DNA from: Setoptus koraiensis
Lineage: Eukaryota > Animalia > Arthropoda
Reading direction: 5' to 3'
Assembly: GCA_048013815.1 (NCBI GenBank)
Contig: CM106585.1
Span: 10,292,001 to 10,356,000, forward strand
DNA length: 64,000 bases
In this document: positions 34,851 to 51,600 of the stretch, piece after piece
Layout: the number at the start of each line of letters is the position of its first letter
Position numbering within the stretch: position 1 is the stretch's first letter
Position numbers and translations under genes: made by a program
Notes under the pieces: generated by a model
What the model was told of the DNA's origin: nothing
Database searches by the model: none
Seen by the model: the letters and a program-made list of their open reading frames with translations, nothing else

Positions 34851-35655
34851 GTTCTCTCAACCTGCCCCCTTCATTTGCACAGTGTTGATCAGGTTAATAG
34901 CATTGTAACAGATAAGTATGCATTTTTGAAACTCAAATCTTCTATTCGAAGAATTGTCGTTCGAAGAACTGTCGATAGAAGAATAGTCATTCGAAGAATT
35001 GTCACCGACCCGCCAGCGAGTGTTGCAATCATTGAAATGTCAAGAGAATATTGCAACCACCGAATGGGTGCGGGATGGTTGCTATCATTGAAAGTTCAGT
35101 CGCATGTTGTGATATAATACTACCTCGTGTTCTTCAATATGACTGCCGTCTCTTCTTGTATCGGTGCCCAGTTAAGCTAGAAGTTAAACTTTATTCTGAG
35201 AATAAAGTGGATCTTTTACTACATAACATATCGTATAAATCGTATTAAATAAAACATTATAGCCCACCAGTTTCTGTGGTTGTTCACACTCCTCATCATC
35301 TTCCTGGGATTCACTTGGAGTGTTAGACTGAGACTCAATCGATAATACTGTCGCTAGTTCAGCTCCCCTTGAATTTGTCAGCTCATTCTCTCCCTTTCTC
35401 GCTTCTTCTGTTAGTGATTGTAATGTGTGGCTATAATACACACATAACATTGCAATTCAGAAAAAGTGAGCAAGGGCACATCGCACGAACCCATTGATTC
35501 GAGCCAGCGCGACCGTATATGCTAGCCATGTATCGGCTTCGCGCTGGCTTCGTATCGGCTCCGAACGAGTCTTTCACATAAATATGTTAGTATATAAACT
35601 TGTGCGCTTGTATGCAGCATGGGCTGGCCAGATTTGCGAGAGCTGATTATGCGCG
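34851..35655 (+). repeat. Composite repeat copy 1, modules A (34851-35439) and B (35440-35655); lacks the LTR/tRNA insert
   Basis: Near-identical to 43622-44546 and 48773-50029 apart from the insert. Confidence 0.95.
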
Positions 35656-35671
35656 TGTCGAGCCAAAAATA

Positions 35672-37831
35672 CAGGGTGGAAAGGGACTTCTTATGTTCCG
35701 TGTGCATCTGCACAATAAAACAATGCTTCTGCGCTTTACCTGCTCGCCGTCACAGAGCCGTCTCTGCTCGCACGGCGGGTAAGGTACGCAAGGTAGGTGG
35801 GGGGGGTGTAGATAGGTGCTGAGGGTAACACTGCTGGTTGGTTGAGGGTACACAATTGATTTTATTGACATTCAAATGACCAAACCAAACAACTCAATTC
35901 AAATATTCTATCCGATCCGGACAGGTAAGCGCGGCTTGGGCCTCGACCTACCGCCTGTCACCGGACATTGGCTACAACGCTGACATGGCGGACACTTCTG
36001 GCACTGAGGGCACTTCTGGCACTGGGGGCACTTTTGTCTCCTGCACTTCCTTCCACCACGCTTTTCGTCGGGTTTATCGTCCTCTTCCTTCTGCCTTTTG
36101 TCACAAAACTCTGTTATATTTCGCAAGGCCTCCTCTTTGGTAACACATACCTCTGCGGACCTCTTTTCTCGCGAAGTAGTCTCTGGACAATGGTCAATGT
36201 TGCCGTCATCCTCATCGGCCTCATTAGGTTCCCGCTCCTCAGATGCTCTCATATCATCTATAGTATCCAGGTCAAGCGACGCCACAGCTCTTAAGAGTTC
36301 GTCATCAGATGAAAGCCAGTTTAGATCCTCGTTCTTCCTCTTGTTCTCGACGGCGAAATCCACCTGTTTACCCCCCAGCTCTCGTGTATAATAAAGTCGA
36401 CGCATAAAACCTGAACGAATCGAATCGGCTAGCATTTTTTGAGGTACAGAATTGAACTCCAAAATAATTCGACTTTTTAACTCTTCCAAGTCTTTGTAGG
36501 CAAATCTCCCTTGGTATATCTTGTTCTTCATGTATCCCCATAAAAAAAAGTCCAGAGGGTTGAGATCTGGGCTATACGGTGGCCATTCAATGAACTTTGA
36601 CTTTTTGCCAATCCAGTAAGGGGACTTAGAGTTGAGGAACTCTCTTGTATTGATTGCAGTATGCGGCGGGGCACCATCTTGCATGAAAACCAGCGAGCCA
36701 TTCCTAAATAAATTGTTAGTTTCACGGTCGTTGAATAGGACCTCGTTTAACATCGCAACGTAGGTTTCGCTATTCACCCTGCCATCGAAAAAGAAAGGAC
36801 CCCACCTCTTATTGACTGAATAACCACACCACACCATCACTTTTTTCGGCCCGAGCCTCTTGCTATCATACACATGCCCAGGGTTAGAGTTCGACCAAAA
36901 AATAGTGTTGTGTTTATTCGCGATGTCAACCAAGCTGAAGATTGCTTCATCAGAAAAAACAATACGATCGATAAATGTGTGATCTTGATTTTGGTTAGTT
37001 TTTTGTGCAATAATGCCGGCAAACTCCAGTCGATCCCCCTCGTGATTCATAATCGAGTGTAAAGTGCGGAAATGGTACGGTTTCAATTTCAATTCATTCT
37101 TCAATATTTTAAGCACGGTAGTGTGGGAGAGACCCACAACATCGCCTATTGTTCGCGAGCTGCTGGATGTCTGCCCATCAGATGCTAAATCTCTAACTCG
37201 TGCAACCATTTCAGCGGTGATTTTCCGTGGGGATGGTCCCCTTTTACCTTGACGCGTCTGAATTCCATAAGTAAAGAGATAGGTTTTGAAATTTTTGAAG
37301 TCAAGCTCGGTCGGTAGTCTGTCGATATTCAATTCTCCGAGTTGTCTTAATTCCTCAATGTTTTCATGGGTCGAGCATATGTCTTCTCCATTAAGTGCAT
37401 AGATATAGATCATTTTGGCTTTCTCTACGGCAGTGTATGCTGGGTCAGTCCATCTTGGCAAAAGGACGGCCAAAAGGAGACAAATTATTAAATGATGCAT
37501 TAGAATTGAAACAATAAATCGAATGATAACAAATTGATAATGATTTAATATTTAATTGATATTTATTTGATAGTAAATGGACAAATAACAAATAGCAAAT
37601 AACCAATAATGACAAATCATTTCCGACTCAGCAGCATGCTCTCGATACCCTACCCCAAGACCGAGCGGTTGGCGTCTAATAGCATAGCACAAAACACGCC
37701 CCACAAGCACAAAAACGCACACGAAGCAGAAAATTAGTTAGCCAAGATAGACGAATTGCGCTCAGAAAATGCTCTACCTTCCACCATACAAAATTTTGCT
37801 CACGGCACATAAGAAGTCCCAAACCACCCTG
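35672..37831 (-). mobile_element. Tc1/mariner superfamily element, DD41D (rosa/Visitor-type), 2160 bp
   Basis: TA TSDs (35670-71, 37832-33); ~31 bp imperfect TIRs CAGGGTGG(AAA/TTT)GGGACTTCTTATGT(T/G)CCGTG. Confidence 0.92.
35908..37500 (-). CDS. DD41D transposase, uninterrupted 530 aa ORF with long acidic and Cys-repeat C-terminal tail
   Basis: HTH (SSRTIGDVVGLSHTTVLKILK), VFSDEAIF, FMQDGAPPH, WPPYSPDLNPLD; 41 residues between second and third Asp by my count. Confidence 0.9.
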   Translation of the reverse strand: MHHLIICLLLAVLLPRWTDPAYTAVEKAKMIYIYALNGEDICSTHENIEELRQLGELNIDRLPTELDFKNFKTYLFTYGIQTRQGKRGPSPRKITAEMVARVRDLASDGQTSSSSRTIGDVVGLSHTTVLKILKNELKLKPYHFRTLHSIMNHEGDRLEFAGIIAQKTNQNQDHTFIDRIVFSDEAIFSLVDIANKHNTIFWSNSNPGHVYDSKRLGPKKVMVWCGYSVNKRWGPFFFDGRVNSETYVAMLNEVLFNDRETNNLFRNGSLVFMQDGAPPHTAINTREFLNSKSPYWIGKKSKFIEWPPYSPDLNPLDFFLWGYMKNKIYQGRFAYKDLEELKSRIILEFNSVPQKMLADSIRSGFMRRLYYTRELGGKQVDFAVENKRKNEDLNWLSSDDELLRAVASLDLDTIDDMRASEEREPNEADEDDGNIDHCPETTSREKRSAEVCVTKEEALRNITEFCDKRQKEEDDKPDEKRGGRKCRRQKCPQCQKCPQCQKCPPCQRCSQCPVTGGRSRPKPRLPVRIG

Positions 37832-37945
37832 TATATGTTTGCTCTTCCCGAGCTCGAGCATGAATGCCCTTTCTTTATTTTGTTATTGTGCAGAGATTAA
37901 AATGGGGGAGGGGTTGTCAGCAGTTCATATTGCGCATGACACGCG

Positions 37946-38580
37946 CATGAGTGACGCATTAGTCACAAGAGGAACGATGATCGCCAAAAGTTTGCAAAGT
38001 TTGAGCCCGATTCAAAAGCAACGACAAGGCCCGACAGATCAGACGAGATGTATCGCGCGATATCCACACGTAAACTGCGGCCAAACTGTGATTTCGTTCA
38101 TTACTGGCCAGCGGTGGGATCATTTGCGATGTCTGGCGATGCCCGGCGATGCTGCCGGCGCTGATGAGCAACGGGCAACATTAATTGTTCAAACTATCAA
38201 ATTACTAATCATGGCCGCCGCCTCAGTCGTCATCTCAGTCGTCATCTCGGTCGCCGTCTCAGCGAGCATCAGCGGTCGTGGATTGTGATTCATAGTGACC
38301 ACTGGCTGCTAGTGACCACTAGTGACTCACCGGCACATATCGGCTGCACAAGGTTGCAGGCAACATCACGTTGCGTCGTGAACTCTCTCAATATATCGAC
38401 GCTTCGTCAACGCACCAAACAACAACAACAACAACACTCGAAACTTTTATCCGAGCAACACTAGACTTACCTGTCGACTTTGTTACACACTCGGCGCACT
38501 CACAAACAGAGGACAGCAAATTGAGTGAGACGAGCTTAAACGGCACCTGAGCTGTCGAAATTTCATAAAATCTCAAACTA
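37946..38580 (+). repeat. Composite repeat copy 1, module C
   Basis: Near-identical to 44547-45160 and 50030-50660. Confidence 0.95.
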
Positions 38581-39900
38581 TTTGTGTGTCCATACTCGGG
38601 CTCGGATTCGTCGCTGCTGCTTTCTATGTCGTCGTCTGATATGTGATCATCAGTCAATTCTAGAGTGTCACCAGATGTTGCATTCTTGATTTTTCTACTT
38701 TCATCGTATTCGATGAGATATTGCTGGAGATTCGGTCCCATTTCGATAGACAATTTCTTGATTATATTTTTCAAAGCTGTTGCTCCATCATTGAAGGTAG
38801 AAATGGCCAAGTAAGTTGCTGCTTCCAGTGTTTCTTTCCCGCTGAACGTCTGTTTGGGTGCGTATTTCCATGCTAAAGAATTCAACGATTCGTTACAATT
38901 CTGTGTAAATCCTCCTGTGCAATTTCTCAGAAGCGACTAGCTGCTAAATTTGTCAAACACCTCTTTGATTTTATCCCATACACATTGAGGGGGCGTTTTA
39001 GGATGATTGCAATTTGTTTGTTGAGCTATCGCCCTGTTGTAGGAGCACCAAGATGTGACACCGGTCGGACAAAGATGGTGTTTCGGATTTTCATCTGTGG
39101 ATGATTTGTGAAGAATTATCCTATCTATGTCAGACTTCATTTGCTCCACTGAATCGGGATTCGATCGTATCGCATGGCCACAGAAAGATGTCAACTCCAC
39201 AATAAGACGCTCAGTCAATCTTCCCTTTCCTTTGATTCCTTTCCCATCGGCCAATTTACCAGCTGCTCCTTTTGTTTTGTGTAATCTGCGTAGCCAAGAA
39301 CCCATACGTTTGGCAACGTGATTCAAGCATTCTTTCTTTCTAACTTCAAGTCCATCGTACGGGTTTGATTCGACCAATTGCTTGAATGATTTAGTGTCGC
39401 TGTCCCCAATGTAAATACCATAGCGAACATCGTGTAATTCTTCTGACCGGTGAAACATCTCGACGATAGCTCGGGGCTCCATGCTTCCTGCAGATCCGTT
39501 ATGATTAGCTTTACATTTCTCTTTGTGTTCCATTTGCCATACTTCAAAATCAGACTCATTCATGTGCTTTCCGTAGTAAGAACACTTCCGACAGAACGAA
39601 TTCTCGATAGAAACATCCACGATCTTCCTCGATTTATTCCCGCAAAGCGTAACGATTCCTTGGAGAGAAGAAAATCCACGCTTTCTCCATGAACCATCGC
39701 CGGATACTGCGACGATTGAATTTGCGGTCAAATCCTTCTTTTCTTGGATTGCATTTCTCATGGATATCTTTGCTACTTCTTCTGTTGCATCAACTAACTT
39801 CTGGGTATGCTCTAAATAGCTCTTTGCATTGATGGGCCTAGGTAAATCCAACATTCCACAGAACGTCTCCAATCCTTTATGTCCGTGACCAAGAAGCCGG
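38580..39900 (-). pseudogene. Mutator-like (possibly Kolobok-type) DDE transposase, central and C-terminal part, one in-frame TAG at 38937-38939
   Basis: VSGDGSWRKRGFSSLQG, HNGSAGSME..MFHRS, YIGDSDTK, KKECLNHVAKRMG, GKGRLT, HHLCPTG..SWC, TQNCNESLN..W...PK. Confidence 0.85.
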
Positions 39901-43260: not shown

Positions 43261-44198
43261 CGCTAACAAGAAGTTTTGAGAACGGCGCCCCCTCACTGCG
43301 CACTGGAGGGGGGGGGGACGCGCATAATGCTTCCAATGTGCACCGATGTTTTAAGAAATATCCAACAGAGGCGCTGCTCAGAATTCGTCCAACGAAGAAT
43401 GGAGTGCAGCGCTGCCCTCGCGGAGCTTTTGTAAACTAATCTAAGTGCACCAGAAAAACATATGCTTGCTTAAATCGCACAATTCGTGCAAAAGCAAGAT
43501 TTTGAGCTTGTTTAGCGCCACAGTACAACACAGGCACACAATACTACTTTTCACTATCTGTGCTTCTGTGATGAGCAAGTGTTTCTGTGCATACGCCACT
43601 TGATCCTCACACCCTATAGTACTGCCCCTTTCATTTGCACAGTGTTGATCATGTTAATAGCATTGTAACAGATAAGTATGCATTTTTGAAACTCAAATCT
43701 TCTATTCGAAGAATTGTCGTTCGAAGAACTGTCGATAGAAGAATAGTCATTCGAAGAATTGTCACCGACCCGCCAGCGAGTGTTGCAATCATTGAAATGT
43801 CAAGAGAATATTGCAACCACCGAATGGGTGCGGGATGGTTGCTATCATTGAAAGTTCAGTCGCATGTTGTGATATAATACTACCTCGTGTTCTTCAATAT
43901 GACTGCCGTCTCTTCTTGTATCGGTGCCCAGTTAAGCTAGAAGTTAAACTTTATTCTGAGAATAAAGTGGATCTTTTACTACATAACATATCGTATAAAT
44001 CGTATTAAATAAAACATTATAGCCCACCAGTTTCTGTGGTTGTTCACACTCCTCATCATCTTCCTGGGATTCACTTGGAGTGTTAGACTGAGACTCAATC
44101 GATAATACTGTCGCTAGTTCAGCTCCCCTTGAATTTGTCAGCTCATTCTCTCCCTTTCTCGCTTCTTCTGTTAGTGATTGTAATGTGTGGCTATAATA

Positions 44199-44329
44199 AG
44201 GACTTGTACTTGCTAGGATTCGAACCTAGACACTTGAATATACGTTTCAATGCTCTGCCAGTTAGGCTACAAGTCGGTTCCTTTATCACTGTAGACTATG
44301 TCCCTTATATGCATACCCTGTCCGTTACA
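44199..44329 (-). mobile_element. Solo LTR of the tRNA-bearing TRIM
   Basis: Same sequence as 49379-49509, same outer flanks as the complete element at 49379-49812. Confidence 0.8.
44205..44276 (-). tRNA. tRNA-like sequence (GTA at anticodon position, Tyr-like), probably a TE-borne pseudo-tRNA
   Basis: A box TAGCCTAACTGG, B box GGTTCGAATCC, anticodon stem TTGAA/TTCAA with 7 nt loop ACGTATA, T stem CTAGG/CCTAG; only 5 of 7 acceptor pairs and non-canonical loop bases. Confidence 0.7.
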
Positions 44330-45292
44330 CACACATAACATTGCAATTCAGAAAAAGTGAGAAAGGGCGCATCGCACGAACCCATTGATTCGAGCCAGCG
44401 CGACCGTATATGCTAGCCATGTATCGGCTTCGGGCTGGCTTCGTATCGGCTCCGAAAGAGCCTTTCACATAAATATGTTAGTATATAAACTTGTGCGCTT
44501 GTATGCAGCATGGGCTGGCCAGATTTGCGAGAGCTGATTATGCGCGCATGAGTGACGCATTAGTCACAAGAGGAACGATGATCGCCAAAAGTTTGCAAAG
44601 TTTGAGCCCGATTCAAAAGCAACGACGAGGCCCGACAGATCAGACGAGATGTATCGCGCGATATCCACACGTAAACTGCGGCCAAACTGTGATTTCGTTC
44701 ATTACTGGCCAGCGGTGGGATCATTTGCGATGTCTGGCGATGCCCGGCGATGCTGCCGGCGCTGATGAGCAACGGGCAACATTAATTGTTCAAACTATCA
44801 AATTACTAATCATGGCCGCCGCCTCAGTCGTCATCTCAGTCGTCATCTCGGTCGCCGTCTCAGCGAGCATCAGCGGTCGTGGATTGTGATTCATAGTGAC
44901 CACTAGTGACTCACCGGCACATATCGGCTGCACAAGGTTGCAGGCAACATCACGTTGCGTCGTGAACTCTCTCAATATATCGACGCTTCGTCAACGCACC
45001 AAACAACAACAACAACAACACTCGAAACTTTTATCCGAGCAACACTCGACTTACCTGTCGACTTTGTTACACACTCGGCGCACTCACAAACAGAGGACAG
45101 CAAATTGAGTGAGACGAGCTTAAACGGCACCTGAGCTGTCGAAATTTCATAAAATCTCAAACTTTTTGTGTGATGCTGCCAGATCGAAGCCGCTGCCGCC
45201 GCCGCCGCTGCTGCGATCCAATCCGATCCGATCGAAACATAAACATATGCGATACGTATGAGATACGTATGAGATACGTATAAGATGGTATT

Positions 45293-48210: not shown

Positions 48211-49384
48211 GTGACGTAGACAGGACGGCAAATTGCAGGTTTTGCATGTTGGTGTCCAATTCTTTAACTCTTTATTTTTGGGGTACTATGTACTTTTTCG
48301 TTATATATTCAATCTCGAACTTTGGCTTTTAACCTTTTGTAGTTTTATATAGCGTGTAGCTAGTTTTATTGAATATATATGAATGTAAGTATAAGTTGGA
48401 GTGAATATATATGATCATTGTGCATTTGTATATATAGTTGCACAGTTAGTTATTAAAACGGCACAGTAAAGTATAATGCAGGCACAAGGTGAATCCTGCT
48501 CACATGTCAGATTGTGAACGTGTTTTGTTGGTTTTATTCAGTTGGTTGTTCTTTGCTGGTGAACTTTCTAAACGCGAATGATTGACGAATCGATTGGATC
48601 AACGAAAACAGATTATTGGGAGAATGGACACAACTTGTTTACATGTGAAAAGAAAAACAGTTTTCAACATGCTTCGATGATGTGATTGGTCAGACAGCGA
48701 CTTGTCTAACTAACTATCACTCGTGTTTTATTACTATCTTAAGACATAATAATTGACGCTAACTACTTGTGTCGCTTCTCTCAACCTGACCCTTTCATTC
48801 GCACAGTGTTGATCAGGTTAATAGCATTGTAACAGATAAGTATGCATTTTTGAAACTCAAATCTTCTATTCGAAGAATTGTCGTTCGAAGAACTGTCGTT
48901 CGAAGAACTGTCGATAGAAGAATAGTCATTCGAAGAATTGTCACCGACCCGCCAGCGAGTGTTGCAATCATTGAAATGTCAAGAGAATATTGCAACCACC
49001 GAATGGGTGCGGGATGGTTGCTATCATTGAAAGTTCATTCGCATGTTGTGATATAATACTACCTCGTGTTCTTCAATATGACTGCCGTCTCTTCTTGTAT
49101 CGGTGCCCAGTTAAGCTAGAAGTTAAACTTTATTCTGAGAATAAAGTGGATCTTTTACTACATAACATATCGTATAAATCGTATTAAATAAAACATTATA
49201 GCCCACCAGTTTCTGTGGTTGTTCACACTCCTCATCATCTTCCTGGGATTCACTTGGAGTGTTAGACTGAGACTCAATCGATAATACTGTCGCTAGTTCA
49301 GCTCTCCTTGAATTTGTCAGCTCATTCTCTCCCTTTTCTCGCTTCTTCTGTTAGTGATTGTAATGTGTGGCTATAATAAGGACT

Positions 49385-49456
49385 TGTACTTGCTAGGATT
49401 CGAACCTAGACACTTGAATATACGTTTCAATGCTCTGCCAGTTAGGCTACAAGTCG
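49385..49456 (-). tRNA. tRNA-like cassette in 3' LTR
   Basis: Same A/B boxes and stems as 44205-44276. Confidence 0.7.
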
Positions 49457-49687
49457 GTTCCTTTATCAGTGTAGACTATGTCCCTTATATGCATACCCTG
49501 TCCGTTACATCCCCCCGCTTTAAATATTGTCGTCCTCGACAATTACATTATACCCCCACAGACTTAGGGTAGTTGGCGACCACAGAAACCAACTTTTATT
49601 CTTTTTTAGAGTTCTAGGGCAGAACCTCCATGTAATGAACGGACAAACGAGGGTATCTCGGGGTAGTTCTATATCTGAAAAAGTACT

Positions 49688-49759
49688 TGTACTTGCCAGG
49701 ATTCGAACCTAGACACTTGAATATACGTTTCAATGCTCTGCCAGTTAAGCTACAAGTCG
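49688..49759 (-). tRNA. tRNA-like cassette in 5' LTR, followed by T5
   Basis: A box TAGCTTAACTGG, B box GGTTCGAATCC, TTTTT (49682-49678) a few bases downstream. Confidence 0.7.
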
Positions 49760-51600
49760 GTTCCTTTATCAGTGTAGACTATGTCCCTTATATGCATACC
49801 CTGTCCGTTACACACACATAACATTGCAATTCAGAAAAAGTGAGAAAGGGCGCATCGCACGAACCCATTGATTCGAGCCAGCGCGACCGTATATGCTAGC
49901 CATGTATCGGCTTCGGGCTGGCTTCGTATCGGCTCCGAAAGAGCCTTTCACATAAATATGTTAGTATATAAACTTGTGCGCTTGTATGCAGCATGGGCTG
50001 GCCAGATTTGCGAGAGCTGATTATGCGCGCATGAGTGACGCATTAGTCACAAGAGGAACGATGATCGCCAAAAGTTTGCAAAGTTTGAGCCCGATTCAAA
50101 AGCAACGACAAGGCCCGACAGATCAGACGAGATGTATCGCGCGATATCCACACGTAAACTGCGGCCAAACTGTGATGTCGTTCATTACTGGCCAGCGGTG
50201 GGATCATTTGCGATGTCTGGCGATGCCCGGCGATGCTGCCGGCGCTGATGAGCAACGGGCAACATTAATTGTTCAAACTATCAAATTACTAATCATGGCC
50301 GCCGCCTCAGTCGTCATCTCAGTCGTCATCTCGGTCGCCGTCTCAGCGAGCATCAGCGGTCGTGGATTGTGATTCATAGTGACCACTGGCTGCTAGTGAC
50401 CACTAGTGACTCACCGGCACATATCGGCTGCACAAGGTTGCAGGCAACATCACGTTGCGTCGTGAACTCTCTCAATATATCGACGCTTCGTCAACGCACC
50501 AAACAACAACAACAACAACACTCGAAACTTTTATCCGAGCAACACTCGACTTACCTGTCGACTTTGTTACACACTCGGCGCACTCACAAACAGAGGACAG
50601 CAAATTGAGTGAGACGAGCTTAAACGGCACCTGAGCTGTCGAAATTTCATAAAATCTCAAACTTTTTGTGTGATGCTGCCAGATCGAAGCCGCTGCCGCC
50701 GCCGCCGCTGCTGCGATCCAATCCGATCCGATCGAAACATAAACATATGCGATACGTATGAGATACGTATGAGATACGTATGAGATGGTATAAGTATGGG
50801 CATAAATATATATAAATATTAATACAAATACAAGCGAGCACAAATCGTGCGCTCAGTGTGATCAATGGAGATCACATTTCGTCGATGAATCCGCCTTTCA
50901 CTCTAATTAGAGTGTGCCCATCAATCAGCGCCAATATTGCCATTGTCCGCCATGGTCTCATCAGGCCAGTCACGACTTGCAGGCAACAGCGCCACCACCG
51001 ACAACAACTGCGCTTTTGGCTAAAACTCTGGCTACAACTGCAACTCTGGCTCTCGCCTCTGCTCGGGCGATTATCTATGCACTCTCAAGTGGAGAGGCTC
51101 AAGTCGAAATTATAATTATTGTTGTTATTATGCAACACTACTTAATTTGCGCTGCTCGCCAATGGTCGCCGATGACCGCCGATGGCTTCGATGGCTTCTA
51201 TGGGGCCGCCGATCCGCTCGATGCTATCAATATTTAGATTAATATCACTATAATTATTGTTGGACGAGCGCGGAGACGGTCCGAGTAACAAGGTCGCTCA
51301 ATTATAAGTCGGCGCTTCATCAATATCTTGTCCGTAGCTATCGGGCGCCAGATGAGAGTTCATTTCCATCCATTTGCACAGCAGAATATTGTTGTTGCTC
51401 GACAACAGCAGCAACAGCAACAACAACAACAACTCGCTCGGCAAGACGTCGGCCCGATATAGACGTTTAGACGAAACGTAGCTCGGGCGAGCAGCGCCGG
51501 AGCACGGGATATTAATCAACGAATTGGTCGCCCGTTGCGCCGCTGAAACAAATCGATCGAGAATTAGATTTAATCAAGCCGCATTGTTGTTCTTGGCCGG

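Follow-up and report, generated by a model that had tools for sequence, protein, structure and literature searches.

The 64,000-nucleotide stretch analysed here (the window; Setoptus koraiensis, GenBank assembly GCA_048013815.1, contig CM106585.1, positions 10,292,001 to 10,356,000) contains, on the minus strand at 49379-49812, a short element in which two long terminal repeats (LTRs) bracket a non-coding interior and each LTR carries a tRNA-like unit with the A and B boxes of an RNA polymerase III (Pol III) promoter. We consider it probable that this element is a non-coding LTR retrotransposon of the Helenus type (TRIMp3) residing in an acariform mite. The assignment is a structural one, to a class that is probably polyphyletic (PMC10886601). 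An initial annotation of the window had delimited the element at exactly these positions, and each part that it had described was seen when the minus strand was read.

Two LTRs bracket a short non-coding interior

The complete 5' LTR, which we named LTR-A, covers 49631..49812. It is 182 bp long and runs from TGTAACGGACA... to ...TGTCCGTTCATTACA, with an imperfect terminal inverted repeat, in line with the 182-bp LTR (49812..49631) with TGTAAC and ATTACA ends that had been annotated. It is directly abutted by the primer-binding site (PBS), TGGAGGTTCTGCC(C) (49630..49618), which over 13 nt is complementary to the 3' end of the host tRNA-Gln(UUG) once CCA is added. The non-coding interior (49522..49617) then leads to a G-rich polypurine tract (PPT), AAAGCGGGGGGA (49521..49510), and a second LTR starts with TGTAAC at 49509, again as annotated. 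From PBS to PPT the interior measures 121 bp and is too short for protein coding. The second LTR is not a complete copy: it spans 49379..49509 (131 bp), stops at LTR position 131, the first T of a T-run, and lacks the last 51 bp.

A repeat search of the window recovered the two LTRs as a direct repeat of 135 nt with 97% identity and a spacing of 303 nt; the 3' copy differs from the 5' copy at LTR positions 65, 116, and 129. The element is 434 bp long as found and would reach 485 bp were its 3' LTR whole. Composed of a 182-bp LTR, a 121-bp interior, and a truncated 131-bp LTR, it has the size of a terminal-repeat retrotransposon in miniature (TRIM). The repeated pattern is far beyond chance, and the same 182-bp unit is present at four other loci with 98-99% identity.

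Each LTR carries a decayed tRNA-like unit

The tRNA-like unit of the 5' LTR lies at 49688..49759 on the minus strand. ARAGORN called it a tRNA-Tyr(GTA), and the Rfam tRNA model (RF00005) matched 49688-49758 with 39.3 bits. Rfam returned two more matches in the window, one in the 3' LTR (49385-49455, 35.7 bits) and one at 44205-44275. Every LTR-A copy scored between 35.7 and 41.9 bits (40.6-41.9 for the full copies elsewhere in the genome), the gathering score of the model being 29. Within the window element, ARAGORN called the 5' LTR copy alone; the full copies elsewhere were called as tRNA-Tyr. The A box, TAGCTTAACTGG, is found at 49752-49741 and a perfect B box, GGTTCGAATCC, at 49709-49699. 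A cassette made of an A box, a perfect B box, and GTA in both LTRs was what the initial annotation had described, and both copies indeed pass the Rfam threshold. The T5 run that it had noted directly after the cassette of the 5' LTR is seen at 49682-49678 (LTR positions 131-135), 8 nt past the unit; no other stretch of at least four T is present on the sense strand of the element. A TATAA box is present upstream, at LTR positions 21-25 (49792-49788).

We compared the unit with the tRNAs of the host, for which the 63 best tRNA loci of the genome were fetched and the 59 intron-less ones aligned. The closest was Arg-ACG, of a different isotype, with 53/72 identity, which is too weak to name a source, and a host tRNA was accordingly rejected as the parent of the unit. 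The host tRNA-Tyr(GTA) harbors an intron and has a different sequence. The unit scores 36-42 bits, compared to at least 53 bits for the 63 host tRNAs listed, its acceptor stem needs a bulge, and its anticodon loop (ACGTATA) places a C at position 33 and a U at position 37. It therefore lacks U33, a purine at position 37, agreement with its isoacceptors, and a score in the host range, all of which are expected of a functional tRNA. By the established rules for tRNAs, a unit with C33, U37, and similar flaws should not decode. Judged by its sequence, the unit is a decayed tRNA-derived sequence and not a host tRNA.

The initial annotation had itself pointed to the possibility that the cassette was nothing but a normal tRNA gene that had become part of a tandem duplication. 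The ARAGORN and Rfam calls, together with the location in a locally triplicated segment, would fit such an origin. It was ruled out by the host tRNA comparison described above and by the dispersed copies, since the whole 182-bp unit occurs on both contigs of the assembly within 4-bp target site duplications (TSDs). Besides, a PBS and a PPT bracket the interior. We therefore give this explanation practically no chance. The LTR-A copies do amount to false tRNA gene calls in an annotation of this genome, at 49688-49759, 49385-49455, and 44205-44275 and at four loci elsewhere.

LTR-A is a small dispersed family with 4-bp TSDs

The assembly that we searched totals 48.7 Mb and consists of two contigs, C1, which contains the window, and C2, each about 24 Mb long. 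Searching it with the 182-bp unit gave four further full copies with 98-99% identity (one on C1 and three on C2), the two 135-nt copies in the window, and one partial match with 79% identity. With the window included, the LTR-A family thus numbers five complete copies and two truncated ones, with identities of 96-100%. Three of the full copies are dispersed solo LTRs flanked by perfect 4-bp TSDs (TTCG, CATG, and CTTG), one of them sitting within an LTR of another family. The fourth is directly preceded by the identical PPT and is therefore a 3' LTR. TSDs of 4 bp, as in animal Helenus, were thus found at three solo LTRs and, as CGTG, around a hybrid element on C2 described below, and not at the window copy. 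The genome-wide search for paired copies with TSDs that the initial annotation had proposed was consequently successful in part: TSDs flank three solo LTRs, and a single LTR-interior-LTR copy was found.

No autonomous LTR-A element was found genome-wide; the PPT/LTR-A junction occurs only twice, and LTR-A is nowhere joined to coding sequence. We also considered whether LTR-A targets tRNA genes and rejected this, as a distance of 1.5 kb around each of four LTR-A insertions contained no further tRNA.

The PBS is a perfect match to the host tRNA-Gln(UUG)

A search for the tRNA 3'-end pattern identified two genes ending in ..TCGGCAGAACCT, located at C1:23495440-23495511 and C2:10271980-10272051, and ARAGORN called both as tRNA-Gln(UUG). 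The gene end ..GGCAGAACCT followed by CCA is a perfect 13/13 complement of the PBS TGGAGGTTCTGCC. A tRNA-Gln primer pairing over 13 nt with two G-U wobbles had been predicted; primer and length stand, while no wobble is needed with the host's own tRNA. The doubt whether the PBS would match any host tRNA 3' end is settled by the same result.

At least 10 other LTR families in the genome harbor the same tRNA-Gln(UUG) PBS directly after an LTR ending in ..TTACA or ..CAACA. When the interior of the miniature element was compared by blastn to other elements with this PBS, the matches were confined to the PBS end (about 20 nt) and the PPT end (14 nt). A relation of this kind, with short sharing at the PBS and PPT ends, has been seen between a fungal Helenus and its Copia partner (PMC10886601). 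Loci of the other families with the tRNA-Gln PBS include C1:17334750, C2:961965, and C1:2614428, and one primer dominates among the elements sampled.

A hybrid element connects LTR-A to a Ty3/gypsy-type family

The LTR-A copy preceded by the PPT belongs to an element of about 1 kb on the minus strand of C2 (C2:12800763-12801764), whose two LTRs are of different families. Its 5' LTR represents a second family, LTR-B, and starts with TGTAGCGCTC; it is followed by a Gln-type variant PBS, TGGAGGTTCGCC, a leader of about 540 bp without any open reading frame (ORF), the identical PPT, and LTR-A as the 3' LTR. The 19-nt PPT/LTR junction is identical in the window element and in this hybrid. The hybrid sits inside the 4-bp repeat CGTG, a flank match with a chance probability of about 1/256.

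A degraded element at C2:~595-601 kb, with LTR-B as its 5' LTR and the same PBS, has a leader that matches the one of the hybrid at 81-89% identity. The ORFs of the degraded element encode a CCHC zinc knuckle, an aspartic protease, a reverse transcriptase, and an RNase H fragment, i.e., the Ty3/gypsy-type order. In this element, the one coding LTR-B copy, an 881-amino-acid ORF spans the zinc knuckle, the protease, and the reverse transcriptase, and the sequence is broken up beginning with RNase H. Directly ahead of other LTR-B copies stands ACGGGGGG, a sequence similar to the GCGGGGGG of the miniature. No tRNA-like unit was detected in the LTR of the coding LTR-B element, and there is no similarity across the LTRs between LTR-A and LTR-B. 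As to the autonomous Gypsy or BEL partner with the same PBS and ends that the initial annotation had called for, a gypsy-type candidate was found in the LTR-B family, and an intact autonomous copy was not.

Unlike LTRs within one TSD are not a product of standard reverse transcription. By analogy with retroviral replication models, an intermolecular plus-strand strong-stop transfer between co-packaged RNAs sharing a PBS would yield such a hybrid.

Empty, solo, and full sites at one locus

The flanks of the window element occur three times, and the genome search placed all three occurrences in the window. A dispersed repeat was rejected as their explanation, given that these three local copies are the only ones genome-wide. 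One of the paralogous segments is empty: at 35431..35460 on the minus strand, ..TTATGTGTG is directly followed by TATTATAGCC.., the junction lying between 35439 and 35438. Another harbors a solo remnant at 44199..44329, also on the minus strand, with the same flanks and the same truncation point as the window element. This remnant differs from the 3' LTR at one position, and at the three sites that set the two LTRs of the window element apart (65, 116, and 129) it agrees with the 3' LTR. On the right side, both filled sites break off at LTR position 131, with ..AAGTCCT running into TATTATAG. The two flank alignments have just one T in common, and therefore no TSD was made and no host bases were lost.

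The simplest order of events would be one insertion into one of two existing paralogues, followed by duplication of the filled segment and by LTR-LTR recombination in one of the copies, giving the solo remnant. We infer that such flush junctions are better explained by end joining that captured an incomplete cDNA than by integration through integrase and a later deletion removing exactly U5 plus the TSD. That the cut falls on the first T of the T5 could be due to microhomology with the T/A-rich host site or have a more specific cause.

The local triplication extends over 34860-38610, 43620-45200, and 48800-50700. Its spacings are unequal (8760/5179 and 6601/5483 nt), which means that the copies are set apart by further insertions, including a DDE_3 (Tc1/mariner-type) transposase ORF at 35908-37500.

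The miniature form is present in other sequencing runs

We then compared the region 49200-50000 with contigs of DNA-type sequencing runs. In run X1, which shares its sample with the best-matching run, the interior was unchanged. Run X4 gave an interior with 3 substitutions and a 2-nt deletion, along with flank contigs identical to the window. From run X7, a 261-nt contig was obtained that covers the 3' LTR start, the PPT, the interior, the PBS, and the 5' LTR end with one difference, and run X6 contained flanks and LTR parts and no interior. The miniature form hence exists beyond the assembly, in at least one diverged version.

A stand-alone relative of the tRNA-like unit

Seven of the eight copies of the tRNA-like unit lie within an LTR. 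The eighth, a single-copy relative outside any LTR, is located on the minus strand at C1:8853728-8853813 and is 79% (genome search) or 80% (blastn) identical to the unit. The similarity begins 2-3 nt before the 5' end of the unit and ends just past the T5. The relative has retained the A box, the B box, and the terminator; its anticodon arm has decayed, and it scores 17.1 bits with the Rfam tRNA model. The limits of the homology are those of a Pol III transcription unit, which suggests to us that a self-contained small-RNA unit had moved into the LTR. It was probably captured as a Pol III-type transcription unit, and C1:8853728-8853813 may be the source locus. The same mode of entry has been proposed for Helenus by Kojima 2024 (PMC10886601).

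Separately, 17 nt at 49107-49123 of the window, ~250 bp downstream of the insertion, match the unit over its 5' end and its A box, with 1-2 mismatches. They lie in host flank common to all three paralogues (also near 43.9 kb and 35.2 kb) and may be a chance match or an old relic.

Copying of the element and alternative explanations

As it encodes nothing, the element would depend on enzymes supplied in trans. Their likely source is the Ty3/gypsy-type elements of this genome, which share its primer and have a similar PPT; reverse transcription would start from tRNA-Gln and be performed by these gypsy-type enzymes. Most likely, the tRNA-like unit provides the signals at which the RNA of the element begins and ends, and would thereby form the R region, with either Pol III or RNA polymerase II (Pol II) as the polymerase. 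With Pol II, the start site would be some 30 nt downstream of the TATAA box that lies shortly before the unit. Whichever polymerase is used, the LTR would be partitioned into U3 (about 1-52), R (about 53-135), and U5 (136-182).

Several observations weigh against the Helenus-type assignment and this scheme. The interior yielded only its self match in the genome search, so that there is a single LTR-interior-LTR copy in the assembly; this copy is not flanked by a TSD, its 3' LTR is truncated, and all counts from the genome search are lower bounds. Propagation as a miniature family accordingly rests on one assembly copy together with the X4 variant and the near-identical X7 contig. No 3' LTR of the coding LTR-B copy was found within 9.9 kb, nor was an intact helper of the linked family found. 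Regarding transcription, a genomic RNA made by Pol III would have to read through the T5 of the 5' LTR, which would stop most transcripts before U5 and the PBS, and the production of mostly short tRNA-like RNA is a fair reading. The minimum-energy fold of the 5' LTR unit is weak (z = -0.83) and not a cloverleaf, and the absence of other T4 runs from the element is not significant as Pol III evidence, 40% of the shuffles being likewise without them.

One alternative is that the window copy is a one-off internal-deletion derivative of a larger LTR-A element and not a member of a propagating miniature family. Its 121-bp interior would then be an accident of deletion or of incomplete cDNA capture. 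The uniqueness of the interior and the state of the window copy, without a TSD and with a truncated 3' LTR, agree with this, as does the fact that the only other LTR-A attached to an interior, in the C2 hybrid, follows a 540-bp gypsy-derived leader. However, no LTR-A element with coding sequence was found, the interior is unlike any element fetched except at its PBS and PPT ends, and the X4 interior variant beside window-identical flanks suggests a second, diverged copy. Taking these points together, we regard a one-off derivative as unlikely.

A second alternative concerns only the role of the tRNA-like unit, which could be a passenger without any Pol III function in an ordinary Pol II LTR, simply forming part of R. 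This would be consistent with the TATAA about 30 nt upstream of the 5' end of the unit, with the T5 right after the unit, at which Pol III would abort before U5 and the PBS, and with the weak fold. On the other hand, LTR-A contains neither an AATAAA nor an ATTAAA signal, and the A box, the B box, and the T5 have been retained in the 80%-identical stand-alone copy even though its anticodon arm decayed. The T5 is also the sole T4-or-longer run in the element, which as said is not significant. Finally, Cassandra, a validated analogue, is stated to start and end its transcription in its 5S unit (PMC10886601). A passenger role is a real possibility, if one toward which we do not lean.

Conversely, the unit could be the working R region of a genomic RNA made by Pol III, in a family that is co-packaged with a gypsy helper. 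Three observations would be compatible with this proposal. The end of the window 3' LTR coincides with the first T of the terminator and joins the empty site flush, with no TSD, as though the inserted DNA stopped where a Pol III transcript would. The stand-alone relative spans exactly the 5' end of the unit to the T5, as if a transcript had been captured by template switching. The hybrid has unlike LTRs within one 4-bp TSD, an arrangement that intermolecular plus-strand strong-stop transfer between co-packaged RNAs with the shared tRNA-Gln PBS can give. As a whole, we put this proposal forward as a speculative one that is quite improbable on the present evidence.

The host is an arthropod closest to acariform mites

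The window contains long, uninterrupted ORFs for eukaryotic proteins, namely Sec15, a UBR-box E3 ligase of 1,936 amino acids, and a DEAD_2 helicase. The closest named Sec15 homologues are those of the acariform mites Dinothrombium, Tetranychus, and Halotydeus (48-51% identity), followed by other arthropods. The host genome appears to be very compact and intron-poor, of the eriophyoid kind (compare PMC7738191).

Comparison with known elements

Helenus, which the initial annotation had named as an analogue, turned out to be the right class (Kojima 2024, PMC10886601). Described Helenus families come from fungi, six animal phyla, and one plant, the only arthropods being chalcidoid and cynipid wasps; those of animals have 4-bp TSDs and gypsy partners, and the published lengths range from 311 to 1263 bp (PMC10886601). 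Most of their tRNA-like units are unlikely to decode, multiple independent origins have been argued, and Pol III transcription was left unvalidated (PMC10886601). The mite element resembles them in being short, in having a tRNA-derived sequence with A and B boxes in each LTR, and in having a tRNA-complementary PBS and a PPT. At the level of the family, it shares with them 4-bp TSDs, solo LTRs, a presumed helper of the Ty3/gypsy type, and spurious tRNA gene calls. It differs from them in its acariform mite host, its tRNA-Gln primer, and its very low copy number: in Kojima 2024, mites and arachnids are not mentioned, and tRNA-Gln is absent from the primers named (PMC10886601). The initial annotation was not aware of such an element in this kind of host. 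Our full-text literature search for the class names likewise gave no later report from a mite; the novelty is nevertheless limited to the host group, since arthropods are already covered by the wasps.

Three other kinds of element share part of this architecture. Cassandra, a plant TRIM, is likewise a miniature element whose two LTRs each contain a small-RNA gene unit, complete with Pol III promoter and terminator, and its transcription is said to start in the unit of the 5' LTR and to end in that of the 3' LTR (PMC10886601). In Cassandra and Ajax, however, this is a 5S unit, whereas the unit described here is tRNA-like (Rfam returned tRNA only, with no 5S match) and belongs to an unrelated lineage with an animal host and a 4-bp TSD. 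Short interspersed elements with a tRNA-derived head (SINE2) are similar in their decayed tRNA-like head with A and B boxes, their lack of coding capacity, and their dependence on the enzymes of others. They have neither LTRs nor a PBS or PPT and use the machinery of long interspersed elements, while the present unit is part of an LTR; the genome yielded no SINE family with such a head, the unit having a single stand-alone relative there. The Ty3/gypsy elements (Metaviridae) of the host, such as LTR-B, share with LTR-A the TGTA..TTACA ends, the tRNA-Gln PBS, a CGGGGGG-type PPT, and the 4-bp TSD, and one hybrid joins the two. In contrast to the miniature, they encode, or formerly encoded, gag, protease, and reverse transcriptase/RNase H, and the coding LTR-B element has no tRNA-like unit in its LTR.

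If our assignment is correct, the range of TRIMs with small-RNA-derived LTRs (Helenus) would extend to chelicerates, with an example in a mite whose compact, intron-poor genome is one in which transposons are scarce. This genome offers a possible source locus of the unit, a perfect primer match, a hybrid copy tying the family to a gypsy-type helper, and one locus at which the empty, full, and solo states are all present. It would thereby provide better material on the origin and mobilisation of such elements than most of the families described so far.

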